Source: Octopus sinensis (Eukaryota). Taken from it: DNA of 64,000 bases. Location of the stretch: NCBI RefSeq assembly GCF_006345805.1, contig NC_043003.1:30442001-30506000 (forward strand). The letters are read 5' to 3'. The notes below the pieces were generated by a model that ran no database searches, had not been told where the DNA came from, and saw only the letters and a program-made list of their open reading frames with translations. Below, piece by piece: positions 291 through 64,000 of this stretch; within the stretch, counting starts at the first letter, position 1, and every line of letters begins with the position of its first letter. Made by a program: the position numbers and the translations under genes.

Positions 291-630
291 CAGGAATAGC
301 TGTGTCGTAAGTAGCTGGCTTACCAACCTCATGGTTTCAGGTTCAGTCCCACTGCATGACACCTTGGACAAGTGTCTTCTACTATAGCCTCAGGCCGACC
401 AAAGCCTTGTGAGTGGATTTGTTAGATGGAAAATGAAAGAAGCCTGTTGTATATATATATGTGTGTGTATCTGTGTCTGTCCCCTCAACATCGCTTGACA
501 ACCAATGCCGGTGTGTTTACGTCCCTATAACCTAGCAGTTTGGCAAAAGAAACCAATAGAATAAGTCCTGGGATCGATTTTCTCAACTAAAGGCAGTGCT
601 CCAGCATGGCTACAGTTAAATGACCAAAAG
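291..630 (+). mobile_element. tRNA-derived SINE, near full length
   Basis: Closely matches the copy at 27428-27805 (gctgtgt..gtaagtagct..ggttcagtcccactg..gaccaaagccttgtgagtggattt..ggcagtgctccagcatggc); central TA/TG microsatellite. Confidence 0.8.
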
Positions 631-634
631 AATA

Positions 635-4190: not shown

Positions 4191-4790
4191 CACATCTGTG
4201 ATGTCTGTTGTAAAACATTCTATGGTAGAAGTGTGATGTTAACATAAAAGCCATACCACTGGAATATCTGATAAAATGTTTGCTAGAATTGCTGAAATCT
4301 TACCGTATTCGTAGCCACACGTTGGAAAGACCATACCATAGATCTATGGTAAAATATTTTCTAGAGATATTGAATTGGGATCTTTTCACTAGAATTGTAT
4401 TCACACAGGAGAAAAACAATAACATTCTCTCCAAGTAGTACTTTATTTCAACACAAATGCATTCACAAAGGTAAAAAGTATATCAACTGATTTCTGAGGT
4501 AAAACATCTTTCCCACACTTGTAGTTCAGAACGACGCATATTTTCAAGAGAAAAGCCATACTACTTGTCATATTTGCAGTGAAGCATTTTCAATTGCGAA
4601 TTCAACTCGGCATAAAACCACACAGAAGTGAAACAATATCAATATGATATATAGAATAAATCTTTTTATACAAATATTGAATTGTCTTCCTACATACATA
4701 CTCACACAAAAGAAAAAGGTGTGCTACAGTGTAATATTTGTGGTAAAATATTCTCCCAAAATGACTGGATATTATTGGTAATTATGATAC
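4191..4790 (+). pseudogene. Decayed C2H2 zinc-finger array (about 7 units)
   Basis: Translatable remnants HICDVCCKTF, KPYH, ERPYH, CIHTGEK and HTHTKEKGVLQCNICGKIFSQ, broken by stops and frameshifts. Confidence 0.8.
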
Positions 4791-4922
4791 ATCCCCTGGA
4801 AGTGGGGATAACTTTAATAAATAAATAAATTTTGTATGCTATTGGACATACCGTCATTGCCTATATATGAATACATATTTGTGTGTATGTATGTGCATGT
4901 TTTATATACATACACACACACA

Positions 4923-18306: not shown

Positions 18307-19392
18307 ATGGATGAAAAAACACAACCTGAAATTACTGATTCATCTATTCAGATAAAGGGAAATAAAAGGGAAAAATCATACCCTTGTGATGTATGTGGAG
18401 AGGTATACACAACAAGAAGTAATTTAATGCAACACAAATTAATCCATGCAACCTCCAAGGTGCACTACTGTGAAGTTTGTGGTAAAGGATTCACTCGTAA
18501 CAGTTTATTGACTCGCCATAAGCATATACATACAAGAGAAAGGCCATACCACTGTGATATCTGTGGTGAAAAATTTTCTAGAAGTGCTCATTTGTCTAGA
18601 CACAGGCATATTCACACAGGAGAAAAACCATATCCCTGTGATGTCTGTGGTAAAACATTCTCTCAAAGTGGTACTCTATCCACTCATAAACATATTCATA
18701 CAGGAGAGAAACCATATCAGTGTGATATCTGTGATGACAGATTTTCTACAAGGGGTCAATTGTCTAACCACAAACGTATCCACACAGGAGAAAGACCCTA
18801 CCAATGTGATATTTGTAGTAAAACATTTTCTAGAAGTGGTCATTTGTCTTCCCATAAACTTATCCACACAGGTGAAAGGCCATACCAATGTGATATCTGT
18901 GATAAAACATTTTCTCGAAGTGGTGATTTGTCTTCTCACAAACATATTCACTCAGGAGAAAGACCATACCACTGTGATATCTGTGGTACAACATTCTCTC
19001 AAAGTGGTAGTTTATCTCAGCACAAACGTATTCATACAGGAGAGAAACCATACCAGTGTGATATCTGTGATAAAACATTTTCAACAAAGAGTCATTTATC
19101 TTCCCACATACGTACTCACACAGGAGAAAGGCCCTACCATTGTGATATCTGTGGTAAAACATTCACTCAAAGTGGTAGTTTATCTCAGCACAAACCTATT
19201 CATACAGGAGAGAGACCATACAATTGTGATATTTGTGGCAAAACCTTTTCTACAACTCGTAATTTAACTCGACACAAACGTATTCACACAGAAGAGAAAG
19301 CATACCACTGTGATATTTGTGATGAAGCATTTTCTACGAGGGGTCGTTTATCTTCCCACATACGTATTCATACAGGAGAAAGACCATCATAA
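18307..19392 (+). CDS. Poly-C2H2 zinc-finger protein ZNF2, 361 aa, 12 fingers
   Basis: 12 canonical C2H2 units with TGE(K/R)PY linkers. Confidence 0.94.
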   Translation: MDEKTQPEITDSSIQIKGNKREKSYPCDVCGEVYTTRSNLMQHKLIHATSKVHYCEVCGKGFTRNSLLTRHKHIHTRERPYHCDICGEKFSRSAHLSRHRHIHTGEKPYPCDVCGKTFSQSGTLSTHKHIHTGEKPYQCDICDDRFSTRGQLSNHKRIHTGERPYQCDICSKTFSRSGHLSSHKLIHTGERPYQCDICDKTFSRSGDLSSHKHIHSGERPYHCDICGTTFSQSGSLSQHKRIHTGEKPYQCDICDKTFSTKSHLSSHIRTHTGERPYHCDICGKTFTQSGSLSQHKPIHTGERPYNCDICGKTFSTTRNLTRHKRIHTEEKAYHCDICDEAFSTRGRLSSHIRIHTGERPS

Positions 19393-19558
19393 CACTGAAA
19401 TTTCTGTTATAAAGCATTGTCACAAAGTAGTTTATTTTGACATAAATATATTTTACAGAGGAGAAAGACCATACCCTTGTGATATCGACAGTGAAACATT
19501 TTCTAGAAGCGGTAATTTTACTCAGTGTAAATATACCCTCACAGAAAGTAAACCATAG
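19393..19558 (+). pseudogene. Two dead finger units after the ZNF2 stop (same remnant at 37270-37410, 50554-50672 and 62042-62170)
   Basis: Reads H*NFCYKALSQSSLF*HKYI, then GERPYPCDIDSETFSRSGNF after a frameshift. Confidence 0.8.
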
Positions 19559-36192: not shown

Positions 36193-37269
36193 ATGGAAAA
36201 AAATGCAGAGCCTGAAACTATTGATTCCCTTACATATACAGAGGAAAATACAGAAGAGAAATCACATGATTTATGTGGGGAATTGTTAACAAAAAAGGAT
36301 TTAATTCGGCATCAGTCAATTCACTCAGTCTCAAAGCTGTATAACTGTGAAGTTTGTGGAAAGACATTTACAAGCAGTACTTTGTTGACTAGCCACAAAG
36401 ATATCCACAATGGAGAAAAATTATACCAATGTTACATGTGTGATGAAAAGTTTTCAACAAAGGACAATTTGTCGTCTCACACATGTATTCAAACAGCAGA
36501 AAGACCATACTGTTGTGATATCTGTGGTAAAACATTTTGTAGAAGTGGTCAGTTGTCTTCCCATAAATATATTCATTCAAGAGAGAGACCATACCATTGT
36601 GATATCTGTGGTCAAACATTTTCTAGAAGTGGTCATTTGATTAACCACAAACGCATCCACACAGGCGAAAGGCCATACAACTGTGATATTTGTGATAAAA
36701 AATTTTCTAGAATTAGTGAATTATCTTCCCACAAATGTATTCACTTGGGTGAAAGACAATATCGCTGTCATAGCTGTGATAAAATATTTTCTAACAGAAC
36801 TGATTTGTCTTCTCATAAACATATTCACTCAGGAGGACGAATATACCACTGTGATATCTGTGATACAACATTCTCTCAAAGTGGAAGTTTATCTCAACAT
36901 AAGCGTATTCATACAGGAGAGAAGCCATACCAGTGTGATATTTGTAAGAAAAAATTTTCTACTAGCAGTTATTTGTCAACCCACAAACGTACTCACACTG
37001 GTGAAAGACCCTACCGTTGTGATATCTGTGGTAAAACATTCACTCAAAGTGGGTGTTTATCTCAACACAAATATATTCATACAGGAGTAAGACCTTACCA
37101 TTGTGATATTTGTGGTAAAGCATTTTCTACAACTCGTAATTTAACTCGACACAAATGTATTCATACAAAAGAGAAAGCATACCACTGTGATATCTGTGAT
37201 GAAACATTTTCTACTAGGGGTCGTTTATCTTCCCACATACGTATTCATACAGGAGAAAGACCTTCATAA
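36193..37269 (+). CDS. Poly-C2H2 zinc-finger protein ZNF3, 358 aa, 11 fingers plus a degenerate first unit
   Basis: ATG at 36193 (MEKNAEPE) matches the ZNF4 and ZNF5 starts; same ORF length (1077 nt) as ZNF4. Confidence 0.93.
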   Translation: MEKNAEPETIDSLTYTEENTEEKSHDLCGELLTKKDLIRHQSIHSVSKLYNCEVCGKTFTSSTLLTSHKDIHNGEKLYQCYMCDEKFSTKDNLSSHTCIQTAERPYCCDICGKTFCRSGQLSSHKYIHSRERPYHCDICGQTFSRSGHLINHKRIHTGERPYNCDICDKKFSRISELSSHKCIHLGERQYRCHSCDKIFSNRTDLSSHKHIHSGGRIYHCDICDTTFSQSGSLSQHKRIHTGEKPYQCDICKKKFSTSSYLSTHKRTHTGERPYRCDICGKTFTQSGCLSQHKYIHTGVRPYHCDICGKAFSTTRNLTRHKCIHTKEKAYHCDICDETFSTRGRLSSHIRIHTGERPS

Positions 37270-37542
37270 CACTGAGATTTCTGTTATAAAGCATTGTTAC
37301 AAAATAGTAGTTTATTTTGATACAAATATATTTATTGAGGAGAAAGAAAGACCATACCGTTGTGATATCTGCAGTGAAACATTTTCTGGAAGTGGTAATT
37401 TTTACTCAGTATATACACACACACACACGCATAAGAAATAAACAATACTCATATATAAATATATTAATAATAATATGACAACAAAAGAATGAATGAGACC
37501 TTGATATTATGTAAATAGATGAATTTATCTATATATATATAA

Positions 37543-41744: not shown

Positions 41745-44510
41745 TCAGGTGTAGTTTCGGCGGATTTCGGAAAGCATGAGGGCCTTAAAAGATGCAGTGT
41801 CATGGTAGTCAACAACTGACGCAGGCAGTTTATTCCATGCTTCAGCAACTCTGAGCGTGAAAAAATGTTTCCGAAAGTCATGAGAGCTGTATTGTTTTCT
41901 GACTTTGTAGGCATGTCCATGTGTGTTAGACACATGGAGATCAAAAAGGTGTTCAGTGTTGTTGTTGGTGAGGTGGTTGATAACTTTGTGGGTGTTTACC
42001 AAGTCCGTCGCCAGACGCCAGAGCTTCAGTGAATCCATGCCCAGGGAAACAAGGCGCTCAGAATATGGTAGGTGTCTGATGGAGGGTATGCGTTTGGTTG
42101 CACGTCTCTGGACAGATTCCAGGAGGTCAATGTTCTGTGCAAGATAGGGGTTCCAAACTGATGATGCAAATTCCAAGTGTGGTCGTACCATAGCTGTATA
42201 CAGTTTTAAATAGATGGCTGGAGAGCGGCTAACAAAAGACCTGCTGAGTGATGCCAAGACACCCTCGGCCTTCCTGACAATCTTAGAGATATGCTTTGTC
42301 CAACGCAAATCACTGCTGACAGTGATGCCTAGGTCACGCTCGCAAGAGGATTTCTTGATATCAGTGTTGTGGAGGGAGTATGTGAACGCAGGGTTTTTTC
42401 TCCCAAAATGCATGGTGGTACACTTGTCCACAGCCAGTTTCAGTTGCCAGTCTGTGATCCATTGCTGCATTGTGTCTAGGTCTGATTGCAGGAAAGAGTT
42501 GTAGACATCAGGATCTGTCCTCTTGATTTCAAGGTACAGCTTGATGTCGTCTGCATATTTCAATACTGTGGCATTCTTTAAATTGGCATCTATGTCGTTA
42601 ATGTATGCCACAAACAAGAGGGGACCAAGGACAGATCCCTGTGGTACACCCGATGACATCTCATATGGTGTAGAGTGCTGTCCTAGAACTGTGACAACCT
42701 CCTTTCGGCTGAGGATGAAGGATTTCAACCAGTTAAAAAGGTCATCCCCCACACCCATTGCAGAGAGTTTCACCATAAGCCTTTTGTGTGGCACAGAGTT
42801 GAAAGCCTTAGCAAAGTCAAGGTAGACAACATCCACCCATGAGCCACTGTCAGTAATCTGAGTAATGTCCTCAAGGAACTCGACAAGCTGGTCACTGCAG
42901 CTGGAGTTAGGGACAAATCCATATTGTGAGGGTCGGATGAGACTGTGAGAGCTCCAGAAGTTCCAGAGTGTTTCTCTGACACACGATTCCATCAGTTTTG
43001 CAATACAGCTAGTGAGACTGACTGGGCGATAGTTGACAGGTGATGTGCGGTCGCCCTTTTTGAACAGAGGAATGACACTGGCAGTTTTCCACTGCTCCGG
43101 AGTAGCACCATTGTTGAGACAGTACTGGAAGAAAATAGAAAGCTGGTGTAAAAGGAAGTGCCTGCCACGTTTGAGAAGCAGGTATGTAACTCCATCGAGA
43201 CCAGGGGAGGCATAGTTGCGCTTATTTTGAAGGTGACGTCGCAGCATTGCAGGCGTAAATTCCATAGTTGTTATGGAGTTTGCTGTTAGTGATGGTGAAG
43301 ATGGTACATCTTGACTTTCAACAGTGAATATGTTTGCATAGCACTCGGCAATGAGTTCTGCGCATTCCTTGGGGTCGTCAGTGATCTGGTTTGTGTGAGG
43401 GTTGCGAAGAGGGCCCACTGGAGAGTGAGGTCTCTGCTTTGAGTGCACATATTTCCAGAAAACCTTACTGTCAGGATTGGCTGCTATGCACTGTTCAAAT
43501 TCAAGCACTGCTTTTTTTGTTACTTGCTTGAGATGGTTGGAGGATTTATTCCGCTTCTTCCTGTTGGTGTCTGATTTATGCAACCTGTATTCCTGTTCAG
43601 CAGTCCGACGTTCCCTCCTGGCAAGTCGGACCGCTGAAGTTTCCCAAATTGCCCTTTTGGGGCGGTTCTTCTTTTTTTGTTTACGTGGCACTGATGCTGC
43701 ACATGCTGCCCATATTGAGTCCAGGATACTCTGGAGTATAGTATTCACATCTCCAGAGTTGTAGAATTCACGCCAGTTTGGGTGCTGTAGTTCAGTGTGG
43801 TACAGGTTCCAATCTGCTCTCTTCCAATCGAAGGAAGCAGATTGGAGATGGTTCAGGTTTTTGTTGCCCGCAAGAGCCAGATTGGCGATGATCATAGCAT
43901 GATCAGAGTCACCTAGAGGTTCCTCCGTAGTGCAATTGATAACCGCTTCAGGAGTTGTGGTGAAGAGCAGGTCCAAGGTGTTGTCGCCTCTTGTTGGAGA
44001 GGTGACTACTTGCGACCAGTTTGAGTCCAGCACAAGCTCAACAAAATCGTTTGCACTCTGTGGCCAATGGAAGGTCTCCCAATCGATCTCAGGATGATTG
44101 AAATCGCCTGCAATAAACACATAAGTGGCTGTTTTCCTGGCAGCAGCTCGGAGGACATTGCAAAGCTGTGTGTCCCGATGGTAACTTGGGGGACGATAAA
44201 CAACGCCAAGCAGGAGTGTTGACATGGTCATACGCACGTCACAGAAAAAAACTTCTTCTTGTGATTCGTTCAAATCGGCACAAGGAATTACCAAAAAATT
44301 TGAACGAACGTAGACCATCACACCACCACCACGGCGGTTAGTGCGGTCCTTACGGAAGAGGTTGTACCCTGTAATGTTGAAAACCCCATCACAGAGTAAG
44401 GAATGCGCCCATGTTTCCGTGACAGTGATGAAGTCAGGGTCAACACTTCTGACGTAGGCGTTGAACAAATGTATTTTGTTGCATAAACTGCGAGCATTTA
44501 AGGACAACAA
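41745..44510 (-). CDS. CR1 ORF2: AP endonuclease and reverse transcriptase, 921 aa from a TTG (frame open from 44594)
   Basis: LNARSL, VTETW, GGGV, GDFN, SDH; YRPVSL, YLDFAKAF, GVPQGSVLGPLLF, YADD; C-terminal RKHFFTLRVAEAWNKLP. Confidence 0.95.
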   Translation of the reverse strand: MLSLNARSLCNKIHLFNAYVRSVDPDFITVTETWAHSLLCDGVFNITGYNLFRKDRTNRRGGGVMVYVRSNFLVIPCADLNESQEEVFFCDVRMTMSTLLLGVVYRPPSYHRDTQLCNVLRAAARKTATYVFIAGDFNHPEIDWETFHWPQSANDFVELVLDSNWSQVVTSPTRGDNTLDLLFTTTPEAVINCTTEEPLGDSDHAMIIANLALAGNKNLNHLQSASFDWKRADWNLYHTELQHPNWREFYNSGDVNTILQSILDSIWAACAASVPRKQKKKNRPKRAIWETSAVRLARRERRTAEQEYRLHKSDTNRKKRNKSSNHLKQVTKKAVLEFEQCIAANPDSKVFWKYVHSKQRPHSPVGPLRNPHTNQITDDPKECAELIAECYANIFTVESQDVPSSPSLTANSITTMEFTPAMLRRHLQNKRNYASPGLDGVTYLLLKRGRHFLLHQLSIFFQYCLNNGATPEQWKTASVIPLFKKGDRTSPVNYRPVSLTSCIAKLMESCVRETLWNFWSSHSLIRPSQYGFVPNSSCSDQLVEFLEDITQITDSGSWVDVVYLDFAKAFNSVPHKRLMVKLSAMGVGDDLFNWLKSFILSRKEVVTVLGQHSTPYEMSSGVPQGSVLGPLLFVAYINDIDANLKNATVLKYADDIKLYLEIKRTDPDVYNSFLQSDLDTMQQWITDWQLKLAVDKCTTMHFGRKNPAFTYSLHNTDIKKSSCERDLGITVSSDLRWTKHISKIVRKAEGVLASLSRSFVSRSPAIYLKLYTAMVRPHLEFASSVWNPYLAQNIDLLESVQRRATKRIPSIRHLPYSERLVSLGMDSLKLWRLATDLVNTHKVINHLTNNNTEHLFDLHVSNTHGHAYKVRKQYSSHDFRKHFFTLRVAEAWNKLPASVVDYHDTASFKALMLSEIRRNYT

Positions 44511-49476: not shown

Positions 49477-50553
49477 ATGGAAAAAAATGCAGAGCCTGAA
49501 ACTATTGATTCCCTTACATATACAGAGGAAAATACAGAAGAGAAATCACATGATTTATGTGGGGAATTATTAACAAAAAAGGATTTAATGCGGCATCAGT
49601 CAATTCACTCAGTCTCAAAGCTGTATAACTGTGAAGTTTGTGGAAAGACATTTACAAGCAGTACTTTGTTGACTAGCCACAAAGATATCCACAATGGAGA
49701 AAAATTATACCAATGTTACATGTGTGATGAAAAGTTTTCAACAAAGGACAATTTGTCATCTCACACATGTATTCAAACAGCAGAAAGACCATACTGTTGT
49801 GATATCTGTGGTAAAACATTTTGTAGAAGTGGTCAGTTGTCTTCCCATAAATATATTCATTCAAGGGAGAGACCATACCATTGTGATATCTGTGGTCAGA
49901 CATTTTCTAGAAGTGGTCATTTGATTAACCACAAACGCATTCACACAGACGAAAGGCCATACAACTGTGATATTTGTGGTAAAAAATTTTCTAGAATTAG
50001 TGAATTATCTTCCCACAAACGTATTCACTTGGGTGAAAGACAATATCGCTGTCATATCTGTGATAAAATATTTTCTAAAAGTACTGATTTGTCTTCTCAT
50101 AAACATATTCACTCAGGAGGACGAATATACCACTGTGATATCTGTGATACAACATTCTCTCAAGGCGGCAATTTATCTCGACATCAGCGCATTCATACAG
50201 GTGAGAAACCATACCAGTGTGATATTTGCAAGAAAAAGTTTTCCTCGAATGATTATTTGTCTGCCCACAAACGTACTCACACTGGTGAAAGACCCTACCA
50301 TTGTGATATCTGTGGCAAAACATTCACTCAAAGTGGATGTTTATCTCAACACAAGCATATTCATACAAGAGAAAGACAGTTCCATTGTGATATTTGTGGT
50401 AAAATGTTTTCTACGGATCATAATTTAAATCGACACAAATGTATTCGTACAGAAGAGAAAGCATACCACTGTGATATCTGTGATGAAACATTTTCGACTA
50501 GGGGTCGTTTATCTTCCCACATACGTATTCATACAGGAGAAAGACCATCATAA
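49477..50553 (+). CDS. Poly-C2H2 zinc-finger protein ZNF4, 358 aa, 11 fingers plus a degenerate first unit
   Basis: Close paralog of ZNF3. Confidence 0.94.
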   Translation: MEKNAEPETIDSLTYTEENTEEKSHDLCGELLTKKDLMRHQSIHSVSKLYNCEVCGKTFTSSTLLTSHKDIHNGEKLYQCYMCDEKFSTKDNLSSHTCIQTAERPYCCDICGKTFCRSGQLSSHKYIHSRERPYHCDICGQTFSRSGHLINHKRIHTDERPYNCDICGKKFSRISELSSHKRIHLGERQYRCHICDKIFSKSTDLSSHKHIHSGGRIYHCDICDTTFSQGGNLSRHQRIHTGEKPYQCDICKKKFSSNDYLSAHKRTHTGERPYHCDICGKTFTQSGCLSQHKHIHTRERQFHCDICGKMFSTDHNLNRHKCIRTEEKAYHCDICDETFSTRGRLSSHIRIHTGERPS

Positions 50554-52026
50554 CTTTGAGATTTCTGTTGTAAAGCATTTTGACACAAATATATTTACTG
50601 GAGAGAAAGAGAGACCATACCGTTGTGATATCCTCTGTGAAACATTTTCTGGAAGTGGTAGCTTTTACTCAGTATATATATATATATATATATATAATAA
50701 TAATAAATGTATTTCTTTAACACACCACTATCATAACAGTATTTTTATATTCTTTATTTCATACTGGCAATTTAATTTTGTCTGCATTACATTCATTACA
50801 TACACTGTTTGACCAGGTGAATATTTCATAGTTATTGTTACTGTTGATAACTCCTGTTTACCTAGACTTTGATGTTCCAGTCCTCCCTCAACCTGCAAGA
50901 ACATCCCTACCTGCTTTGTACACCTGCATTTCTACACATATCCTCTTATGTCGAACATAATAATATTCACTATTAAACTACACATAAATTTATGCTTTAT
51001 TGATCTTTAGGTTCATTAACTATAGACCATTCCTTCAAATTTAAACTTTGTGGCAACTCAGTATATCTTTACTATTTACCATCAAAAACTGAACTCTCAG
51101 TAACTTGGAGATGTAAGAAGAAATGTGTTACAGTATTATTAAAAAGAAAAATAAATAGAAAGAGATGTGACAGACTAAGAAATGTGTAGATAGACAGCAT
51201 CAATGAAGGGATAGAATTAATTAGTGATGTGTATGTAAGAATGCTATGAGATGGGACCAAATGGATTCCTATGATAGTTGACATAATCTGACCACATAAC
51301 TCACTACAGATATTACTTAATATCAATGTAGTTTTTGAATAACTTTGGAGTTGGCCATGTCACATTGGTGGCTAATAAAATTGTGAGGAGACCATATCTC
51401 TGGTTGTGTGAGACATCTTTTAACCATCCAGTCTATTGGCAAAAATATACAACTAAACTGGATGGTAAAAAGTCTAGTGTTAATGTGTTCTTGTGCAGGC
51501 AAGATGGCTATATGTTAGGAACTGCAACAGTTGGTCATTGTCATGTCATCTGTAGATAATTTTATGGGTACATTGTAAGGAGATGTATAGGTAGAATACT
51601 AGTGAACAAGATTGAAAGCAAATGACCTACAACACAACATCTACAACTGTTTATTTCATTAAATCAGTGGAATATTCAGAATATTTTAGTTCTCTTTGGA
51701 TAGATTACAAAATATCAAGGAAGAATATAGACAATTATAAGCTAATTCAATACATAGTAAGGCATATATCTCACCAGTGTTTTGATATGACAGTTATATT
51801 ATTGGTTTATATTAGAGGTAGTATAGCATGGAACTGGCATTGGGAGATGAGACATATCTAACTTTTTAATAAATGTATTACAATAACATTGTGTGTTAAC
51901 TCTATCTAGGTTTGTTATTCATGGAGTTGGTATTGTAATTGTTTCCATTCAACAGTTTCTCCAGTTTCATTGTGAACATTCTTGACAAAACATGCTAGTA
52001 TTATAGAAAATACTTCCGAAGCAAAA

Positions 52027-53200
52027 ATTGGGTCACCCCATAAACAATGCATTTTTTAAAATTCCTTTTTTTATTTCTCAAAATTAAGATACACAAAGCT
52101 CTTTTTTAATCTAAACTATACTCTCCTTTATTTTCTACAATGCTGTTCCATCTAGCTGGTAAACTTGAAAGGCTCCTCTTCCAAAATTCACTTGTCTATG
52201 ATGAAAAATACTCCTCTAGTATTGTTCTGACTTCGTTTACAGAATTCATATTTTTTTGTGTCCTGATGATTTTGAAGACTGGAATGAATGATAATCAAAT
52301 GGGGCAATGTTTGGCGAATATGGTGGGTGGGGCATCATTTCTCATTCAAACTGCTCCAGCCTTTGGAATGTAATCCTTGCTGTGGCCAAGCATTATCCTG
52401 ATGGAAGAACAATTTTCATCTTGAAATGAATGATGGCCATTTTACTTCTAGCACTGACTTAAGCCACTCTCAAGCTGCTCACAGTGGATCTCTTTACTTA
52501 TTGTTCAGTTTGGGTTTAAAAGTTCAAAGTGGACTAAACCTTTCATATTCCACCAAATATAACAATACTTTATGTGGGTGAAGACCTTCTTTAACCTAGG
52601 GTACCAGTGTTTCTCTTTTTCCTACCCACTGTCTTCAGCGCTTGACATTTTTATAGAGAACTCATTTCTTGTCATCAGTCACTATTCAGCCCAGAAAAGG
52701 TGCATTCATGAGACATGACAGCAAAGAAAAGCACACATTCACTCTCTGCATGCGATTAGACTTGGTAAGTTTGTGGGGAACCCATTGACCCAATTTGCTG
52801 AATTTTCCAATGGCATGTAGGTGTTGATGAATGATTGAATGACCAAATCCAAGGTTCTCTGCTAGTTCCTCAACAGTTAAGATGGGATTTTGTTCCAGCA
52901 GGGTTTGCAGGACATCCTTGTCGAGCTCTACAGATTTTCCTGGATGAGGTTCGTCTTCGTGGATGTAGTTTCTGGCTCGGAATTTCTGGAACCACCATAG
53001 ACATTGGCTCATGCTTATTGTCTGAACCCCATACACTGCATTAATATTATTCGCATTTTCTGTTGCGTTGTTGCATTTATTGAACTCATAAAGCAGAATA
53101 TGCTCCTTTGTCACTTCCATTACAGCTTTGAAAAAATAAATGCTTAAATCGAACTGCACTCTTCAAAACTTGCTCTAAGAATGAGTATCATGGCAAAATT
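52027..53200 (-). mobile_element. Degenerate mariner element
   Basis: HILLYEFNK HTH region, WFQKFR, GQWVPHKL and HQDNA motifs; one TIR-like end attgggtcacccataaacaatgc at 52027. Confidence 0.85.
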
Positions 53201-53236
53201 ACTACCTGGTAATACAAAAATTTAATACTCTCCATA

Positions 53237-53425
53237 TTGGAAAATAATATTTACTATGAGAAGATAAAACAATACAACCCACAGAAATCACTTAAAAACT
53301 TATCCTCCTTACTTCAAATACATGGAAAGGGTCTCACTAAACATGAAATAGACTATTTATCCAATTTTAAATACAGTCCTAGGCTATTCTACGGATTACC
53401 TAAAATACACAAAAATCCACATATT
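53237..53425 (+). mobile_element. Penelope-like element RT fragment
   Basis: PRLFYGLPKIHK motif. Confidence 0.65.
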
Positions 53426-55292
53426 TGTAAAGCCTGCAAAGTTTATCATGCTGACATGGGTTGGATTCTTCAACATGATCTGACAAACCAGAGGACTGCT
53501 TTGGCATTGTTTATGTGGCTGGAAACAGGCACATCAAGAATTGTTAAATTTCAGGAAGCATGTTCGAAAGATACATTATTCTCACAGATAATACCCAATG
53601 CAGATAGGTTATTCCATGATTTGACAATTCTGAGCATGAAAAAATTGTTTCTGAATGTAGTGGGTGCTATGCTGTTTTTCAATTTATAAGCATGTCCTCA
53701 GATGATAGAAGTATTGAATTCAAAAACGTTGTAAAAATGGTGGGTAGTCTTGTGGGCTTATATCAAGGAGGCAACAAGACAAGCTATGGTGCCTGACAGA
53801 AGGTAATCATCTGGTTGCAAGTCTCTGAACAGCTTCATGTAGATCAATATTCTGGACAAGAGATGCAAACTATAAGTGTGGACATAACTATTGAGAGCTG
53901 GTAAGCAGCTGACACAGGTCTCATTGAATGATACTAAGACACTTTCAGTCTCTTTGACGATTTTAGAAATGTGGTTTGTCCAACACAGATTATTGTCAAC
54001 AATATGAAGGTCAAGTTCAGCAACAGATTTATGGTTGGTTTTATGGAAGATGTAGATAAAACTCTAGATGTTTTCTTCACAAAATGTTGTGGTGTACTAG
54101 TCTACAGCCAAGTTGCATGGCTAATCAGCAACCCATTGCCACATTTTGTTAAGATGAAATTGCAGGAAAGACCTATAACATAAGGGATGTTCTTTTCATC
54201 TCAAAGAAAAGCTTAATGTTGTCTGTATACTTAAACATAGTAACATGCTCCCAGTTGGCATGTTTAGGTCATCTATGTATACCTCTATACACAAACAGTT
54301 TGAGGGATAAAATGCCTTGTGGTATTTAGTAAGGTCTTAATTTTAAATGCCAGAGGTAAATGTTGCTTTTCATTTTCTAGCATGTGCAGGAGAGCTTTCT
54401 TATTTGAAATATGATCTGATTTTTAAGAAACTAATATTTTATATATGTTTTGTTCCATCATCATTTAACGTCTGATTACCCTACTGGCATGATTTGGATA
54501 GTTTTACAGGATCAAACAAGATGAAGGACTGCATCAAGCTACAATGTCTGCTATGGTTCTGGCACTAGAGAAGTCACCAACTGACAAGACAGAAAAAGAA
54601 GTCTCTGCAACTGATTGAAGTTGTAGTCAAGAGGAAGTAGCTTTATTCTAGGAAATATGTTAAGACAGAAACAAGTATTTTGCTACAGAAGAAAAAGATA
54701 GTTACCCCACACTATATTTGAGGGTGACTAGCTGAAAATAAAGTAAAAATGTTGGTGTTGCAAAGTCAGGCTATACCCCAAGGTACAAGAAGTGTAGGAA
54801 AAGAGTGGCAGATGGTTAGACACAAGGGTAGAAATAAATGTAGTAAAAGATGAGGTATGCATTTTATAATTTTTCTCACATTTAAGTGTTTAGCAACAGT
54901 TATGTCACTCAGGAAAAGAAGCATGTACAAATGGAATAAACTCATTCATGAAGAGAAGCTGTGTACTCAAGTTCTTAAGTATAGTGAAAGAAATAAAAGA
55001 TAAATATATCTAAATGTAAAATATTTATAAAATTTTGTATGCTGGAGCTGGATGACAGTCACATATACACACTAAAACCGAGCTTTCGTAAATCTTTTTT
55101 TTTTCTCAGTGGACTCCTAGGTTTTCAATGATGGATATTCCAAACATGCAAAATATCATGTTTTCAAAATTTTAAATTCCCCCTTCCCATCCTAAAATTT
55201 TTTTAATTTTTAACTTTTTGCAAAATTTTTTTTTTTCAATCTAAAAAATACGGAGATTAACAATATGGCAAACAAAAACTTAATTAAATTTC

Positions 55293-55685
55293 AAATTTTG
55301 TATGAAAAACTCCAAATTTGATGCATAAACACTTGCCACCCAGCAGAAAAGGGTGCACGTGTGCAACAGTCTCCACAGCTCACTGCAAATGAATGACTGA
55401 AACAGCATGTTTTACATATCAGAGGTGTGTGGATCAATCTAGGAAGTATGTTAAAGATTTTAGTAGACATATGACTGAGAGTTATTTAATATTGTGTTTG
55501 CTTCTATGAGAATCGTTTACCTTTAAAGCGAAAAAACAAGACCGACATATACGAGTATGTAAAACATGCTGTTTCACTTTTGTTCATTTTCAATGAGCTG
55601 TAGAGATTGTTGCACACGCGCACCATTTTTTTGTTGGGTGGCGACTAGTGTGTGGATCAAATTTGGAGTTTTTCATATAAAATTT
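55293..55685. mobile_element. Nested MITE with about 125-bp TIRs
   Basis: aaattttgtatgaaaaactccaaatttg..aaacagcatgtttt is inverse to aaaacatgctgttt..caaatttggagtttttcatataaaattt. Confidence 0.8.
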
Positions 55686-55890
55686 GGTCAAGACTTCCAC
55701 CCAAACCATCCTTTTATTAAAATTTATTTTTAGACACAAACCCCACCTTTTCGGCTACGGGGAATACGGATCTGCAAAAAAATTGGCAAAAATCAGTATC
55801 TTTAACCCCCACCCTCCAACCCCATTTATTTCATCTTTCACTTTTTTCAGAAATTTTTTTTTAAATATGAGGCAAAATACGCAGATTATG

Positions 55891-56299
55891 GATCTTTTCG
55901 GTTTGAACGGCAGTTTTTAACATAATTTCTAGGTAACTAAAAAATTTTAAACTTCGTACACTGGTAGAATGTATTTATAAAACATCTTTTTCTCTTGGCT
56001 TTATTGAGAAAATTCTATAGTTTGTAAGATATTTGTTGTTTTTTTTCTTCAATTTCTGTAATTTCAACCAATCACTGACGTCTATTGAGGTAAAAAAAAA
56101 CATTCTGTGCCGTATGAATATGTCCCTCGTTTAAGAAACAGATTGAGTTTATTTACATTTGTGAAGAAAAAAAGATACCCTTCCCCCCAACTCTAACTAA
56201 CCCTAACCCTAAATTGAAATGCAATAGATCGATACTAAGGTCATAATTATGGGTGACAATTTCATATGACACCGCTAGAAAAAACTGCCGTTCAAACCG
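55891..56299. mobile_element. Nested MITE with a 19-bp perfect inverted repeat
   Basis: cggtttgaacggcagtttt (55899-55917) / aaaactgccgttcaaaccg (56281-56299); flanked by the direct repeat agattatg (55883-55890, 56300-56307). Confidence 0.8.
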
Positions 56300-57439
56300 A
56301 GATTATGATATGATTCTGAAAAAAATTTCCAAAAATTTTTGTAAAATGTTTTTTAAGATTTTTGTTTTTCTAAATATGCGGAAAAATACGGACATTATGA
56401 TTCGGACAAAAATTTCAAAACATTTCTGGAGTTACGGTTAGGGTTAGTGTTGGGGGAAAAGGTCAAAGAATTTTGGGGAGGGAATTTAACAATGTCAGTT
56501 TTTGACAAATTTCCGGAACTTCCGTATCCGAAAACGGAGGTTTTTTGGCAAAAATAAATAAACAAATTTGAGAGAAAATGGAGGGGAGGACGGGCGGAAG
56601 CCTTACCAAAATTTGAAATTAATTAATTTTTTGTTTGCCATATTGTTAATCTCCGTATATTTTCACATAGATTGTAAAAGAAAATTCGAAAAAAGTTAAA
56701 AATGAAAAAATTTGATGGGAGGAGGAATTAAAAATTTTGAAAACGTGATCTTTTGCATATTCGGAATCTCTGTCATCGAAAACCTTGGAATCCGCTGAGA
56801 AAAAAAAATTCCGAAAGGTCGAGGGGGAGGGTGACTCGTCCAGCTCCACCTTTCGTTTTTGTGTCTAGACACGACAAAATTTTTTTAATTTATCTCACAT
56901 TTTGGTGTAGCATTATTTAATTTTTTAGCAACACATTCAAATCACACTCAACTGTCATAAAAACAAGGGCACGGGAAAATTCCGTCACAAGATACCCTTC
57001 TAAAAAATAAGTCGAGATTGTCATGTGAAAAGTGCATCTGGAACTTTCAACGTCGCTACAAATAGCAGTCTCTTAGCATCGTTGAGGGTGTCTCAAAACA
57101 CAAAACTTCTATCGCACAGACTGGATTTGGTCTTCGGAATGAGACAGTACTTCCACGCTAACAGAAATTTTGGAAAACTCAGTTGGGTCCCAAAATAATG
57201 TACTACTATTACATCTTTCCAACCCACTTGTAATCTCAAGTTGGTTGCCAAACTCCAGTTCATACGCATGCTGTTTTTTCACTGACTTTTCTGACTTTAT
57301 TCATCTAGTCATCCATTTTCTCCACATTAGTATAACTGCACCATTATTCACTTCACTCAGTCCTTTCTGAAAAAGCCAACCCACTTCAATTGCTCATAGA
57401 TCTGAACAAAATTGTTGCTGCGAAACAAGATACTTATAA

Positions 57440-57900
57440 ACAACTCTTTATTGATAAGAGGTAGTTTTATTCCTATGCGATCAAGGACACTTCCGGTTTA
57501 TTCTTGACTTTGCTGTGTTCGTTTATATTGTAGATATATTATTATTTCTTTATACATATTTACATTGTATGAGTAATAATTAAGTACTGATTGTAATTAA
57601 CTTAAGACATAATTCATTAACCAGACTAAGACAGAGATATCCTGAATGAAGTAAAAAGTTCTGTCCAGTTTATCAATTTCAAGTTTGACCACTTCAATTG
57701 TCTCATCTTATAGCTACATTTTTATGTAAGCATGATTTATATTTAATTTACGTCATTTTATTGAAAGATCTCTTTTATATTTACATTTCTACTTCCTCCA
57801 CTACTTCTGTTTCCTACAGGATCCTACTTTCTTTTATTTACTTCTTTCTTGTGTATTTCATCTAAACACCGTAATTAATTCGAATTTCTGGAAATTACTA
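57440..57900 (+). promoter_or_regulatory. Conserved upstream module of ZNF5: donor-like GAG|GTAGTT at 57461 and ETS motif (57489-57496)
   Basis: Paralogous to the four other modules. Confidence 0.6.
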
Positions 57901-58399
57901 ATATTTACGGACGTAACCAAACAGCTTTTGCTAAACGGTGGCGGAACAAACATAGACACAAACACACATACTTTTCTGTACTTTGCAGCTATTGCACAAA
58001 TCGTTAGGCTTGCTTACTCAGTATTAACTGCAAAAATAAGCTCAAATTTTGGTAATGTGCTATACGTTCTGTCTCACTTTTAAATTGTATATATTATCAT
58101 CATTTTCTTTTAACGTCCACTTTTTTCAAAGCTTACATGGCTCACACAAAATGTGTTGAAGTAGATTTTATACGGCCGGATAGGTAATCTTTCAACATTT
58201 GGTGGTTAAATAAGTAAATTAAAGGGGAGATAATTAGGTTATCGTTCTTTTCATCGAAATCATTCTCCAAAATAGGTTCTCATTGTTTACTTACACTGAA
58301 ATATATTCTCCCATTCTTTACTTTCGAAATGGCACGTGGAAGACCAGCTGCACGGCAATTCATTGTTCCTAAATTTGAAGTCCTCAACCCTGAGTCAAT

Positions 58400-58775
58400 T
58401 TTGTAAATTAAGTAAAGCAGAAGACAAAATTCTTCAGTGGCTGGCACGTCGTCGACTAATTATGAATATGTAAATTTGGGAAAATTGTAATTGATTATGT
58501 GGCCTCACTACATGTGGTGACTGTATGAATGTAAAAACCTATGTCTGTAAGCTCTGTAAAAGGAAGAAATCAATTCGTCACTGTTCATTCTTCGAAAGAA
58601 GCCATATTTCATTCTACAAGTGTTGCTCATTTATTGTCGGGCACGCGATATGTCACAAGAAGATATTATGAATGAGTGTTCATTGACAACCGACTACTGC
58701 AGTAGATTTGTGTAATTTTTGCCGTGAAGTCTGTGATATATGACTTCAGCAAAACCCAGTGGAACCAAAGAATAC
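58400..58775 (+). mobile_element. Merlin-like transposase N-terminal fragment
   Basis: ILQWLARRRLI, KSIRHCSFFERSHIS and AVDLCNFCREVC resemble the Merlin SIR-x-SWF and VDWYNFCREVC motifs. Confidence 0.6.
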
Positions 58776-59094
58776 TTTTGTTAACTTTTTGTTGGTTCTA
58801 GCCAATGTTTACGTTGTTTAACAGTAAGTTGACTTATTTATCTCCCCTTCTTATTTCCCATTTCTTTTTTATCACTTTAATTACCAGATACAGAAAGATT
58901 ACCGGCCGGATATTATTGCTGTTGCAAACCATCTCTTTCCAAGCAGTCAAATTTCCCCAAGGCCAAACATGTCTTTCACGGAAGACGAAGTTCACTCATG
59001 TGAGAATGATGCCTGTTTATAATCACATAATCTCAAGAGCAGGAATGATATATAGACACTCACACACAAATATACAACTGGCTTCTTTCAGTTT

Positions 59095-59205
59095 CCATTC
59101 ACTTGCCCAAAGGGTTGTCTAATAGGAGTGAAACAGAGATGCCATGCAAAGGAAGTGAACCCAAGACCTTGTGAGTTTGAAAATAGACTTCTGAACCACA
59201 GCTAT
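59095..59205 (-). mobile_element. tRNA-derived SINE fragment
   Basis: Partial reverse-complement similarity to 27428-27560. Confidence 0.45.
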
Positions 59206-59561
59206 ATACTGTTTACTTTTTTCAATCCAAGTGTGAAGTAATCTGTTTTAGATCTATTATGGTGTAGATAGTAAGGAAGATGAGAACAAGTGATGTAGAC
59301 TGAGAGCAACAACCAAAGTTTGGGGTGAATGTAGTAATCAGTTTTGCAGTTATTGTGGGGTACATATGTATCTTTGGTGCCTTGGATCAAGTGGAGGATT
59401 AAATGATTTTTGAATGTTTTTAGACCAAACTATTGTGACCTGTAGTCATCTGTGTCTTTATGCCAAGATGCACTTCATTGTGTCTTTTGCCTTTACATAT
59501 ATGTTTTGGCTGTTTCTAGTTATTCCAATAATCTTTATGTTAATACTTCATTGTCCCTAAT

Positions 59562-59586
59562 GTATGATGTTGCATTTCTATTTCAG
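59562..59586 (+). promoter_or_regulatory. Putative splice acceptor of the ZNF5 coding exon (exon starts at 59587)
   Basis: gcatttctatttcag|gttatctgatg. Confidence 0.7.
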
Positions 59587-59959
59587 GTTATCTGATGACA
59601 TTGAAATAAAAATATTTCACTGATGAGAATCAACCTTTTAAGAATAGAAATAACTTAATCAATCTGAAGTCAGCCCATTTTGGCAACGCTTGATTTAATG
59701 GATGAGAAAAACTTGCTTGCAATTTAGATTGTGCAAAAATTTTTACTCTGTTATTTATTGAAAGATTCTATGTACAGATTAAACTTTGAAGATATGTCTT
59801 GTGCACCGGATATATTTCTTTAAGTGGAGCAGATTTAGCAATCTTTTGGTCATTGGATATTGGTTACTAGATTCAATCCTAATAAATCTACTTGAGATTC
59901 TTTAACAGCAAAAATATCATCACATTTTGTTAAAGATATAAGAAAAAAGATTAAAAGAT

Positions 59960-62041
59960 ATGGAAAAAAATGCAGAGCCTGAAACTATTGATTCCCCTAC
60001 TCATCACACAGAGGAAAATACAGAAGAGAAATTGCATTCATGTGATTCACGTGAGGAATTATTCACAAGAAAGGATTTAATTCAGCATCAGTCAATTCAC
60101 TCAGTCTCAAAGCTGTATAACTGTGAAGTTTGTGGAAAGACATTTACAAGCAGTACTTTGTTGACTAGCCACAAAGATATCCACAATGGAGAAAAATTAT
60201 ACCAATGTTACATGTGTGATGAAAAGTTTTCAACAAAGGACAATTTGTCATCTCACACATGTATTCAAACGGCAGAAAGACCATACCGCTGTGATATCTG
60301 TGGTAAAACATTTTGTAGAAGTGGTCAGTTATCTTCCCATAAATTTATTCATTCTGGAGAGAGACCATACCATTGTGATATCTGTGGTCAAACATTTTGT
60401 AGAAGTGGTCAATTGTCTTCCCATAAACATATTCATTCAAGGGAGAGACCATACCATTGTGATATCTGTGGTCTAACATTTTCTAGTAGTGGTCATTTGA
60501 TTAACCACAAACGCATCCACACTGAAGAAAGGCCATACAACTGTGATATTTGTGATAAAACATTTTCTAGAATTAGTGAATTATCTTCCCACAAACGTAT
60601 TCACATGGGTGAAAGACAATACCGCTGTCATATCTGTGACAAAATATTTTCTAACAGAACTGATTTGTCTTCTCATAAGCATATTCACTCAGGAGGACGA
60701 ATATACCACTGTGATATCTGTGATAAAACATTCTCTCAAAGAGGTATTTTATCTCAACATCAGCGCATTCATACAGGAGAGAAACCATACCAGTGTGATA
60801 TTTGCAATAAAAAATTTTCTTCAAATAGTAATTTGTCCTCCCACAAACGTACTCACACTGGCGAAAGACCCTACAGTTGTGATTTCTGTGGTAAAAGTTT
60901 CCCTCGACGTGCACATTTATTTCAACACAAGAATACGCACACAAGAGAAAAACATTTTCATTGTGATATTTGTAATAAAATGTTTTCTTCGGAACAGTAT
61001 TTCACTCGACACAAATGTATTCGTACAGAAGAGAAATCACATTCATCTGGAGAATTATTCGAAAGAAAGGATTTAATTCAGCATCAGTCAATTCACTCAG
61101 TCTCAAAGCTATATAACTGTGAAGTTTGTGGAAAGACATTTACAAGCAGTACTTTGTTGACTAGCCACAAAGATATCCACAATGGAGAAAAATTATACCA
61201 ATGTTACATGTGTGATGAAAAGTTTTCAACAAAGGACAATTTGTCATCTCACACATGTATTCAAACGGCAGAAAGACCATACCACTGTGATATCTGTGGT
61301 AAAACATTTTCTAGAAGTGGTCAGTTGTCTTCCCATAAATATATTCATTCAAGTGAGAGACCATACCATTGTGATATCTGTGGTCTAACATTTTCTAGTA
61401 GTGGTCATTTGATTAACCACAAACGCATCCACACTGAAGAAAGGCCATACAACTGTGATATTTGTGATAAAACATTTTCTAGAATTAGTGAATTATCTTC
61501 CCACAAACGTATTCACTTGGGTGAAAGACAATATCGCTGTCATATCTGTAATAAGATATTTTCTAAAAGAACTGATTTGTCTTCTCATAAACATACTCAC
61601 TCAGGAGGACGAATATACCACTGTGATATCTGTGATACAACATTCTCTCAAAGTGGAAGTTTGTCTCGACATCAGCGCATTCATACAGGAGAGAAGCCAT
61701 ACCAGTGTGATATTTGTAAGAAAAGATTTTCTACTAGCAGTTGTTTGTCTGCCCACAAACGTACTCACACTGGAGAAAGACCGTACTGTTGTGATATCTG
61801 TGGTAAAAGTTTCACTCAGAGTGCACATTTATTTCAACACAAGCATACTCATTCAGGAGAAAGACAGTTCCATTGTGATATTTGTGGTAAAATGTTTTCT
61901 ACAAATCAAAATTTAGCTCGACACAAATGTATTCGTACAGAAGAGAAAGCATACCACTGTGATATCTGTGATGAAACATTTTCGACTAGGGGTCGTTTAT
62001 CTTCGCACATACGTATTCATACAGGAGAAAGACCATCATAA
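59960..62041 (+). CDS. Poly-C2H2 zinc-finger protein ZNF5, 693 aa, 22 CxxC finger units (18 canonical), internally duplicated
   Basis: Two tandem copies of the ZNF3/4-type array in one ORF. Confidence 0.92.
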   Translation: MEKNAEPETIDSPTHHTEENTEEKLHSCDSREELFTRKDLIQHQSIHSVSKLYNCEVCGKTFTSSTLLTSHKDIHNGEKLYQCYMCDEKFSTKDNLSSHTCIQTAERPYRCDICGKTFCRSGQLSSHKFIHSGERPYHCDICGQTFCRSGQLSSHKHIHSRERPYHCDICGLTFSSSGHLINHKRIHTEERPYNCDICDKTFSRISELSSHKRIHMGERQYRCHICDKIFSNRTDLSSHKHIHSGGRIYHCDICDKTFSQRGILSQHQRIHTGEKPYQCDICNKKFSSNSNLSSHKRTHTGERPYSCDFCGKSFPRRAHLFQHKNTHTREKHFHCDICNKMFSSEQYFTRHKCIRTEEKSHSSGELFERKDLIQHQSIHSVSKLYNCEVCGKTFTSSTLLTSHKDIHNGEKLYQCYMCDEKFSTKDNLSSHTCIQTAERPYHCDICGKTFSRSGQLSSHKYIHSSERPYHCDICGLTFSSSGHLINHKRIHTEERPYNCDICDKTFSRISELSSHKRIHLGERQYRCHICNKIFSKRTDLSSHKHTHSGGRIYHCDICDTTFSQSGSLSRHQRIHTGEKPYQCDICKKRFSTSSCLSAHKRTHTGERPYCCDICGKSFTQSAHLFQHKHTHSGERQFHCDICGKMFSTNQNLARHKCIRTEEKAYHCDICDETFSTRGRLSSHIRIHTGERPS

Positions 62042-62170
62042 CATTAAGATTTCTGTTATAAAGCCATTGTCACAAAGTAGTTTATTTTCACAAAAATATA
62101 TTTACTGAGGGGAAAGAGAGACCATACCTTTGTGATATCTACTGTGAAACGAGAGGAAATTTTTACTCAC

Positions 62171-62228
<58 letters not shown>
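62171..62228. repeat. Compound (TA)n(TG)n(TA)n microsatellite
   Basis: Direct reading. Confidence 0.92.
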
Positions 62229-62229
<1 letters not shown>

Positions 62230-62303
62230 GCATACTCACATAGGAAATAAACCATAGCCATATATATTGTAAAATTTTTTTTTTAACTAACAGCATATTT
62301 TAT

Positions 62304-62638: not shown

Positions 62639-64000
62639 CATCATCATCGTTTAACGTCCGCTTTCCATGCTAGCATGGGTTGGACGGTTCAACTGGGGTC
62701 TGGGAAGCCCGAAGGCTGCACCAGGCCAGTCAGATCTGGCGGTGTTTCTACAGCTGGATGCCTTCCTAACGCCAACCACTCCGTGAGTGTAGTGGGTGCT
62801 TTTTATGTGCCACCGATACAGGTGCCAGACAAGGCTGGCGAACAGCCACGCTCGGATGGTGTTTTTTACGTGCCTCTGGCACGGAGGCCAGGCGGGGCTG
62901 GCACGGCCATGATCAGATGGTGTTTGTTACGTGCCACCAGCACGGAGGCCAGTCGATGCGGTGCTGGCTACAGCCACGTACGAATGGTTCTCTTATGTGC
63001 CACCGGCACTGGTACCACAAACTACAAATTCCATTGATGTGGATTGATTTTGATTTTCACTTGCCTCAACAGGTCTTCACAAGTAGAGTTATGTGTCCCA
63101 AGAAGGAAGGTATGCACAGGTGGACTGACTACGTCCCAGGTAGGGGCCACGGGTTATAGCCTCACTTGTCCTGCCGGGTCTTCTCACACACAGCATACTT
63201 CCAAAGGTCTCGGTCTCTGGTCATTTCCTCGGTGAGACCTAAAGAGCAAAGGTCGTGTTTCACCACCTCATCCCAGGTTTTCCTGGGTCTACCTCTTCCA
63301 CAGGTTCCCTCACCACTAGGGTGCGGCACTTTTTCACACAACTATCTTCATCCATTCTTACCACATGTCCATACCAGCGTAGACGTCTCTCTTGCACACC
63401 ACATCTGATGCTTCTTAGGTCCAACTTTTCTCTCAAGGCACTTATACTCTGTCAGGTATGAACACTGACATTACACATCCATCGGAGCATACTGGCTTCA
63501 TTTCTTGCGAGCTTACACATATCCTCAGCAGTCACGGCCCATGTTTCACTGCCATGTAGCATGGCTGTTCATACACAAATGTGTCATACAGTCTGCCTTT
63601 TACTCTGAGCGAGAGGCCTTTTGTCACCAGCAGAAGTAAGAGCTCTTTGAACTTTGCCCAGGCTGTTCTTACTCTAGCAGTTACACTTTCGGCACACCCA
63701 CCCCCACTACTGACTTGATCACCTAGATAACAGGAACTATCAACTATTCCTAGTTTTTCTCCCTGGAATGTGGCGGAAGACGGTCTCTGCGCATTTTCAG
63801 TGTTTATTGCACCAGAGCATCTGCCACATACAAAAACTATATTCCTAGTTAGCCTTCCTTTGACATTGCTGCACCTCTTATGTGTCCATAGCTTACACTT
63901 GGTGCATCTTATAGAGTTCCTACCTACGCCTTTTCTACAGATCAAGCAGGGCCATCTACCTGAAGGCGTTTGAGATTTGTCTACCTTCCTACTTATTAGG
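62639..64000 (-). mobile_element. RTE LINE 3' part, running off the window, with a PHD-type finger in ORF2
   Basis: (CAT)n tail inserted at a catca site that is empty in paralogs (about 51075, 20808); C4HC3 motif at 63817-63948; YLGDQV and GLSLRVKGRLY motifs. Confidence 0.88.

Follow-up and report, generated by a model that had tools for sequence, protein, structure and literature searches.

A head-to-tail doubled C2H2 zinc-finger array within one reading frame of a tandem gene cluster in Octopus sinensis

Routes of array growth and the ZNF5 gene

Arrays of C2H2 zinc fingers, such as those of PRDM9 and the KRAB-ZNF proteins, gain and lose fingers by unequal crossing-over within their 84-nucleotide (nt) repeat, and tandem duplications and deletions can also be mediated by microhomology, through replication template switching or microhomology-mediated end joining (MMEJ). 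Cephalopods have reportedly expanded their C2H2-ZNF genes, an expansion treated by Albertin et al. in 2015 at the level of gene number. Duplication of finger blocks within a protein is well established as a frequent route of C2H2-ZNF evolution. Internal array duplications are reported for 140 human C2H2-zf proteins, and the predicted specificities of the copies have diverged (PMC13541613). For octopus genomes, lineage-specific C2H2 expansions are described (PMC12513265). Here, we describe ZNF5, one of five C2H2 zinc-finger genes that form a tandem cluster, each as one long open reading frame (ORF), in a 64,000-nt stretch of the Octopus sinensis genome (RefSeq assembly GCF_006345805.1, contig NC_043003.1, positions 30,442,001 to 30,506,000; hereafter the window, with positions counted from its first letter). 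The analysis supports a fusion, within ZNF5, of two collinear finger arrays joined head to tail and in frame at a 13-mer.

ZNF5 resembles vertebrate internal duplications, such as those of ZNF721 and ZNF775, in that a collinear finger block was repeated and its copies then diverged at specificity residues, and it contains the collinear, near-identical finger pairs by which such duplications are recognized (PMC13541613). Particular to ZNF5, relative to these cases, are the extent of the block (11/12 repeats, including a degenerate first finger), a breakpoint on a single 13-nt repeat without homology to its left, and its host lineage, as a cephalopod ZNF without KRAB. Its setting, a tandem same-strand cluster of lineage-specific paralogs, is like that of the cephalopod C2H2-ZNF expansions (PMC12513265). 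The studies of these expansions cover gene number, whereas ZNF5 is a doubling within a gene, and no description of array doubling within genes was found in the parts of this literature that were covered.

The ZNF5 ORF consists of a leader of about 20 residues, half A (1005 nt), half B (912 nt) and one terminal finger (Table 1), and exactly this protein is encoded on CM016865.1 of GCA_006345805.1, at ~30.5 Mb, in the O. sinensis assembly of Li et al. 2020 (as cited in PMC10700109). It holds 24 finger-like repeats (12 + 11 + 1), of which 18 are canonical C2H2 fingers of the Krueppel type (C-x2-C-x12-H-x3-H); among the 6 degenerate repeats, the last ligand is Arg in two and Gln in two, and the other two are relics of a finger 0 without cysteines. 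Pfam matches were obtained to PF00096 (E = 4.6e-100, over 14 stretches) and PF13465 (E = 2.3e-130), and Tandem Repeats Finder (TRF) returned an 84-nt (28-residue) period, with linkers that read TGEKP, TGERP, SGERP or TEEK. A 252-nt (three-finger) period, also suggested by TRF, was rejected, as the finger distance matrix gave 25.6-27.5 differences at all offsets from 1 to 7. No KRAB, SCAN, BTB or other effector domain was found by Pfam in the ORF, where the only non-zinc-finger match was a marginal one to BolA, within the finger array.

Each unit comprises 11 finger-like repeats, fingers 0-10, of which finger 0 lacks cysteines and finger 2 has Gln as its last zinc ligand. In finger 10, ZNF3 has His as the last ligand, where ZNF4 and the two ZNF5 halves have Arg. 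Finger 2 ends in HTCIQ in ZNF3, ZNF4 and both halves of ZNF5 (60184-60267 and 61180-61263), and finger 10 ends in HKCIR in ZNF4 and both ZNF5 halves (60940-61023 and 61852-61935). In these two fingers, the Cys located two residues past the first His might act as a substitute zinc ligand.

The junction between the two halves

The TEEK-coding 13-mer TACAGAAGAGAAA occurs exactly in the leader, at the junction and in the last linker of ZNF5 (60019, 61024 and 61936), as a first-pass annotation of this DNA had reported. Further exact copies lie in ZNF4 (49533 and 50448), ZNF3 (36249) and the ZNF1 leader (1823, minus strand), and the window contains 14 matches with at most one mismatch, compared with 0.18 expected. 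The annotation had also described a C-terminal context to the left of the middle copy and an N-terminal one to its right, and both are borne out: the 45 nt to the left of 61024 show 8 mismatches to the C-terminal context of ZNF5 and 6 to that of ZNF4, versus 30-34 to the N-terminal contexts, and the sequence to the right aligns with the N-terminal finger-0 region of ZNF3, ZNF4 and ZNF5. The contexts switch exactly at the single copy of the 13-mer, with no inserted bases. The repeat periods of 1005 and 912 nt hold as proposed, both being multiples of 3, the TEEK-to-TEEK unit of ZNF3 and ZNF4 is 915 nt and in frame, and the fusion indeed introduced no frameshift, with one ORF of 693 amino acids (aa) running through both halves. 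A finger-by-finger distance matrix gave one clean collinear diagonal between A and B over all 10 aligned fingers. Partner fingers differ by 0-16 nt, versus mostly 20-43 nt for non-partner pairs (10-17 at the lowest, around the finger-3/4 hybrid described below).

Head-to-tail copies, a repeat at both unit ends that is present once at the junction, and the absence of filler liken ZNF5 to microhomology-mediated tandem duplications. The mechanism is read from this scar only, be it template switching or MMEJ, and later conversion may have changed the original length of the microhomology. Non-allelic homologous recombination (NAHR) over long homology fits poorly, as the leader and C-terminal left contexts differ at 30-34 of 45 nt, which is near-random; to the right of the breakpoint, a weak finger-type similarity remains, judged by eye rather than computed. 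ZNF2 has an intact finger 0, and there the corresponding sites are spaced by 924 nt (11 x 84). The leader TEEK therefore occupies a linker-equivalent position, and an exchange between the two sites would thus have been in register, 11 repeats apart.

The 93-nt length difference between the halves had been attributed to one extra finger plus three codons. The finger (84 nt) is present in half A, whereas the three codons do not form one piece: they are the sum of two changes to finger 0, with 6 nt inserted in A and 3 nt deleted in B. All three indels are in frame. The block carrying the extra finger (60352-60435) is of finger-4 type over nt 1-43 and of finger-3 type over nt 44-84, and it retains the ancestral CGQTF, where finger 4 reads CGLTF in both halves. 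By its composition, this hybrid is the product of a one-finger unequal crossover, and it is a textbook case of the in-frame exchange between repeated linkers or fingers that ZNF5 has in common with PRDM9 and KRAB-ZNF arrays. The main event is unlike those crossovers in its 11-repeat register shift, its 13 nt of identity and the lack of homology on the left.

Divergence of the halves and origin of the doubling

Divergence between A and B is distributed unevenly along the unit. Finger 0 shows 8/72 nt differences and two indels, fingers 1-5 differ at 5/420 nt, with a synonymous divergence (dS) of 0.011 (1/89 synonymous sites; columns 50-600, with the 3' end of finger 0 included), and fingers 6-10 differ at 52/420 nt, with a dS of 0.30 (19/77 synonymous sites). 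The first-pass annotation had rightly located the differences mainly in fingers 6-10. Fingers 1-5 and 6-10 contrast in synonymous differences (P = 2.7e-6), in all nucleotide differences (P = 1.6e-11) and in the shape of their trees (P = 0.011), and the divergence of finger 0 contrasts with that of fingers 1-5 (P = 1e-4). Values as far apart as 0.011 and 0.30 require either gene conversion or an origin from two paralogs. Dating the split by a simple clock on overall A-B identity was accordingly dropped. Non-coding flanks of ZNF3, ZNF4 and ZNF5 have diverged by d = 0.11-0.19, and the split of the halves, as seen in finger 0 and fingers 6-10, would therefore be at least as old as the split of the genes. 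The doubling thus reads as real and not recent, with a divergence since then that was not simple, and fingers 1-5 of A and B form a probable gene-conversion tract.

Exchange between paralogs is evident elsewhere in the cluster. The ZNF3 and ZNF4 leaders are identical (69/69), while the adjoining 5' flanks have diverged by d = 0.145. From the ATG through finger 3, ZNF3 (36193-36600) and ZNF4 (49477-49880) are near-identical, with 2 differences in finger 0 and 1 in fingers 1-3, and this 5' coding identity suggests a tract of gene conversion across the 13 kb that separate the paralogs. Finger 10 of ZNF3 (37080-37163), which has kept its His ligand, differs from that of ZNF2 at 8/84 nt versus 14/84 from that of ZNF4, a likeness that points to a further exchange between paralogs. 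As judged from these patterns, gene conversion is demonstrably active in the ZNF cluster.

Both halves are under purifying selection. The ratio of nonsynonymous to synonymous divergence (omega) between them is 0.45 overall (P = 0.007 versus 1) and 0.35 in fingers 6-10 (P = 0.001). Residue differences between A and B in fingers 1-5 number 0, 0, 3, 1 and 0 (total 4), and none of the 20 recognition positions differs there, whereas recognition positions -1, 2, 3 and 6 of fingers 6-10 differ at 9/20, versus 21/120 elsewhere (P = 0.015). The same pattern was common to all paralog pairs compared. By this comparison, the subfamily has a constant and a variable module, each of which ZNF5 has twice.

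The history that we favor, at a probability of roughly one half, is a single old intragenic doubling between two TEEK sites, with later conversion of fingers 1-5 and a one-finger crossover in A. A register-shifted exchange or a replication template switch would have joined, once, the 13-mer at the linker-equivalent position before finger 0 and the 13-mer in the linker that precedes the last finger. The most likely setting is a single ZNF4-like gene in which ~915 nt were duplicated in tandem, with ZNF4 as the best stand-in for the progenitor before doubling. The reading frame would have been kept because the spacing is a multiple of 3, and the event would be roughly as old as the ZNF3/ZNF4/ZNF5 split. 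Gene conversion may later have made fingers 1-5 of the two halves uniform, as also between ZNF3 and ZNF4, after which half A would have gained its additional finger by an ordinary one-finger unequal crossover. Finger 0 would have acquired in-frame indels in both halves, and purifying selection would have held both open, with fingers 6-10 diverging mainly at DNA-contacting residues, so that the protein would read DNA with two sub-arrays, related yet distinct. The most economical history appears to be an old doubling and then a single conversion tract over fingers 1-5. Site patterns place the halves as sisters at 19 sites, versus 8 and 3 for the alternatives, with 25 and 17 private changes per half, and A and B share derived states relative to ZNF3 and ZNF4 at 4 sites of finger 0 and 7 of finger 9.

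Several observations weigh against this history. Overall identity between A and B is 93.0%, and either half is 91-93% identical to ZNF3 or ZNF4. Outside the homogenized tract, support for A and B as sisters is only 11:8:3, so an origin from two paralogs would explain the data roughly equally well. Fingers 6-10 form a mosaic in which B groups with ZNF3 or ZNF4 in places; imports may thus have inflated the divergence, which makes the age estimate soft. In addition, the public annotation of the 693-aa product describes a gene at 49477-62041, from the ZNF4 ATG to the ZNF5 stop. As it merges two ZNF loci, it represents either isoforms of one "gene" or a faulty model, and it was rejected as independent evidence for a 693-aa transcript.

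The most serious rival, although we consider it unlikely, is the fusion of two tandem ZNF4-like neighbors, ~10 kb apart, by a microhomology-mediated deletion from the upstream C-terminal TEEK to the downstream leader TEEK, which would have removed a terminal finger, the intergenic DNA and one leader. The structure seen today would be identical. Hence, the earlier proposal that recombination between TEEK sites doubled the array stands as far as the in-frame 13-mer junction goes; its one-gene doubling and a fusion of neighbors are indistinguishable in the sequence, and its divergence history needs correction. Fusion would also suit halves that are as diverged as separate paralogs across finger 0 and fingers 6-10 and whose overall identity is no higher than that to ZNF3 or ZNF4, as well as the direct orientation of ZNF2 to ZNF5 at spacings of 10-18 kb and the mosaic patterns at eight sites that group A with ZNF4 and B with ZNF3. 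It would, however, take two events, a gene duplication and a ~10 kb deletion at a 13-nt repeat, versus one 915-nt tandem duplication, and the derived states shared by A and B in fingers 0 and 9 speak against it, though sister paralogs share such states too.

Less probable still is a recent doubling, of the age indicated by fingers 1-5 (dS ~0.01), with finger 0 and fingers 6-10 later overwritten by conversion from paralogs. The near-identity of fingers 1-5 and the demonstrable activity of paralog exchange in the cluster would be expected of such a history, and finger 8 of B is only 4 nt from that of ZNF3 and its finger 10 only 7 nt from that of ZNF4. Nonetheless, it calls for at least two conversion tracts flanking an untouched core, compared with one tract in the favored model, and the window holds no donor for fingers 6-10 of A, each of which shows 6-17 differences from every unit. 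Moreover, finger 0 of A and of B each carries private changes and a private indel, yet the two share four derived sites.

The first-pass annotation had gone further and taken the two TEEK sites, said to be present in every ZNF4-type gene, as a built-in route to array multimerization. The first part failed, as site 2 of ZNF3 is mismatched, ZNF2 has only the C-terminal site (12/13) and ZNF1 only the leader site; two or more exact 13-mers occur in just ZNF4 and ZNF5 of the five window genes. The second is overstated, since exact in-frame direct repeats of 13 nt or more, the longest of 22 nt, form 13 pairs in ZNF4, 12 of them in 84-nt register, and the TEEK pair is merely the most widely spaced of the 13, with 12 other in-frame repeats beside it. 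That the leader and C-terminal TEEK pair is a recurrent recombination site, at which arrays were repeatedly doubled, tripled and collapsed while conversion kept a five-finger module uniform and the other diversified, is a long shot. Beyond ZNF5, the window holds neither 2x nor 3x arrays, be it in its four other genes or in the rest of its sequence, nor a reciprocal single-finger product; a one-mismatch 13-mer at 54684 was rejected as such a product, being a non-coding chance match. One old doubled gene of five and no reciprocal product do not show recurrence. If recurrent TEEK recombination were real, it would offer modular construction of proteins that recognize tandemly repeated or bipartite targets.

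Protein searches returned no relatives of the doubled array. Searching with full-length ZNF5 gave only generic long ZNFs at ≤49% identity and no cephalopod match, a search with the junction-spanning peptide gave one candidate and no match, and an exhaustive representative search with this peptide was dominated by poly-ZNFs, at ≤48% identity. Looked up as exact cluster members, the five window proteins were absent from the collection (the ZNF3 query being uninformative). Bivalve and gastropod ZNFs appeared in the searches, and no cephalopod ZNF did. Close relatives of the ZNF5 locus thus seem to be absent from the searched protein collections.

An assembly artefact joining two genes or two haplotypes is a weak worry that we consider hardly credible, despite a duplicated-BUSCO fraction of 5.2% in the O. 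sinensis assembly, above that of other octopus assemblies: the halves differ by 7% and three indels, far beyond expectation for alleles, the 13-nt repeat cannot provide an assembly overlap, which means that reads must contain the junction, each k-mer across it occurs just once in the window, which has no gaps, the longest exact runs between units (134-186 nt) lie in fingers 1-2, where a misjoin would neither create nor remove the junction, and an intact frame of 2,079 nt with only in-frame indels is unlike a random join.

The ZNF cluster and the meaning of the doubled array

Coordinates of the five genes and of the parts of ZNF5 are collected in Table 1. The 5' flank of ZNF5 is conserved with those of ZNF3 and ZNF4 and holds an acceptor-like ttctttaacag.

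Table 1. Zinc-finger genes of the window and components of the ZNF5 reading frame
Feature	Position	Strand	Remarks
ZNF1	635-1918	minus	427 aa; single long ORF; C2H2 zinc-finger gene
ZNF2	18307-19392	plus	361 aa; single long ORF; C2H2 zinc-finger gene
ZNF3	36193-37269	plus	ATG at 36193; single-array paralog; TEEK site 1 exact, site 2 with one mismatch
ZNF4	49477-50553	plus	358 aa; single-array paralog; both TEEK sites exact (49533, 50448; spacing 915 nt)
ZNF5	59960-62041	plus	Single ORF; 693 aa plus stop
N-terminal leader	59960-60018	plus	Single occurrence; 95.7% identity to ZNF3/ZNF4 leaders; 3-nt insertion
TEEK 13-mer, copy 1	60019-60031	plus	Leader site before finger 0
Half A	60019-61023	plus	1005 nt; fingers 0-10 plus extra finger
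Constant module, half A	60100-60603	plus	Fingers 1-5 including extra finger; near-identical to 61096-61515
Extra finger, half A	60352-60435	plus	Finger-4/finger-3 hybrid
Variable module, half A	60604-61023	plus	Fingers 6-10; 52/420 nt differ from 61516-61935
Junction, TEEK 13-mer copy 2	61024-61036	plus	Left context finger 10, right context finger 0
Half B	61024-61935	plus	912 nt; fingers 0-10
Constant module, half B	61096-61515	plus	Fingers 1-5
Variable module, half B	61516-61935	plus	Fingers 6-10
TEEK 13-mer copy 3, terminal finger and stop	61936-62041	plus	13-mer at 61936-61948; 105/106 nt identical to ZNF4
3' relic finger (EKERPYRCDICSETFSGSG)	62100-62140; also ~37330-37400, 50610-50660, 19450-19520		

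Past the stop codons of ZNF2 to ZNF5, at a distance of ~60-70 nt and in another frame, the remains of one more finger are conserved (EKERPYRCDICSETFSGSG); the present stop codon apparently truncated a longer ancestral array in these four genes. A (TA)n(TG)n(TA)n microsatellite (62176-62232) follows immediately 3' of the relic in ZNF5, and a (TA)n run occupies the corresponding place in ZNF4, from ~50680 onward. The arrays also contain, in a second frame, ORFs of 135-370 aa (VISVVKHFL...) at 60543-61076, 61455-61916, 49967-50428, 36683-37090, 18554-19267 and 616-1728 (minus strand), which are most likely a by-product of a stop-free frame in the repeated finger unit and not genes.

Other sequences accompany the cluster. 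At ~4310-4801 (plus strand) lies a decayed ZNF-like fragment, interrupted by stops and frameshifts in every frame and probably a pseudogene belonging to this cluster. Between ZNF3 and ZNF4, on the minus strand (41745-44510), an intact ORF of 921 aa encodes endonuclease and reverse-transcriptase domains (PF03372, PF14529 and PF00078) and is a long interspersed nuclear element (LINE)-type retrotransposon, possibly a young one. A 157-aa ORF at 52686-53159 (minus strand) with a Mos1-type transposase helix-turn-helix (PF17906, E = 4.7e-13) represents a mariner-like fragment, and a weak PHD-like match, under the Pfam cutoff, lies at 63532-63945 (minus strand). A second annotated gene (749 aa, minus strand) covers the whole 32.5-kb locus.

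Taken from its sequence, ZNF5 is a real, intact and well-preserved poly-C2H2 gene and an old example of a common mode of growth. By analogy with ZNF721 and ZNF775, its product may bind in two related modes or favor targets that are bipartite or directly repeated. The doubling reveals no new mechanism and answers no open question; it is, rather, an unusually clean case of one-step array doubling whose later history of conversion, diversification and an added finger is legible. ZNF5 thereby adds a cephalopod case to a process known mainly from vertebrate ZNFs, and it indicates that the octopus ZNF expansion includes within-gene remodelling and concerted evolution, beyond gene duplication.

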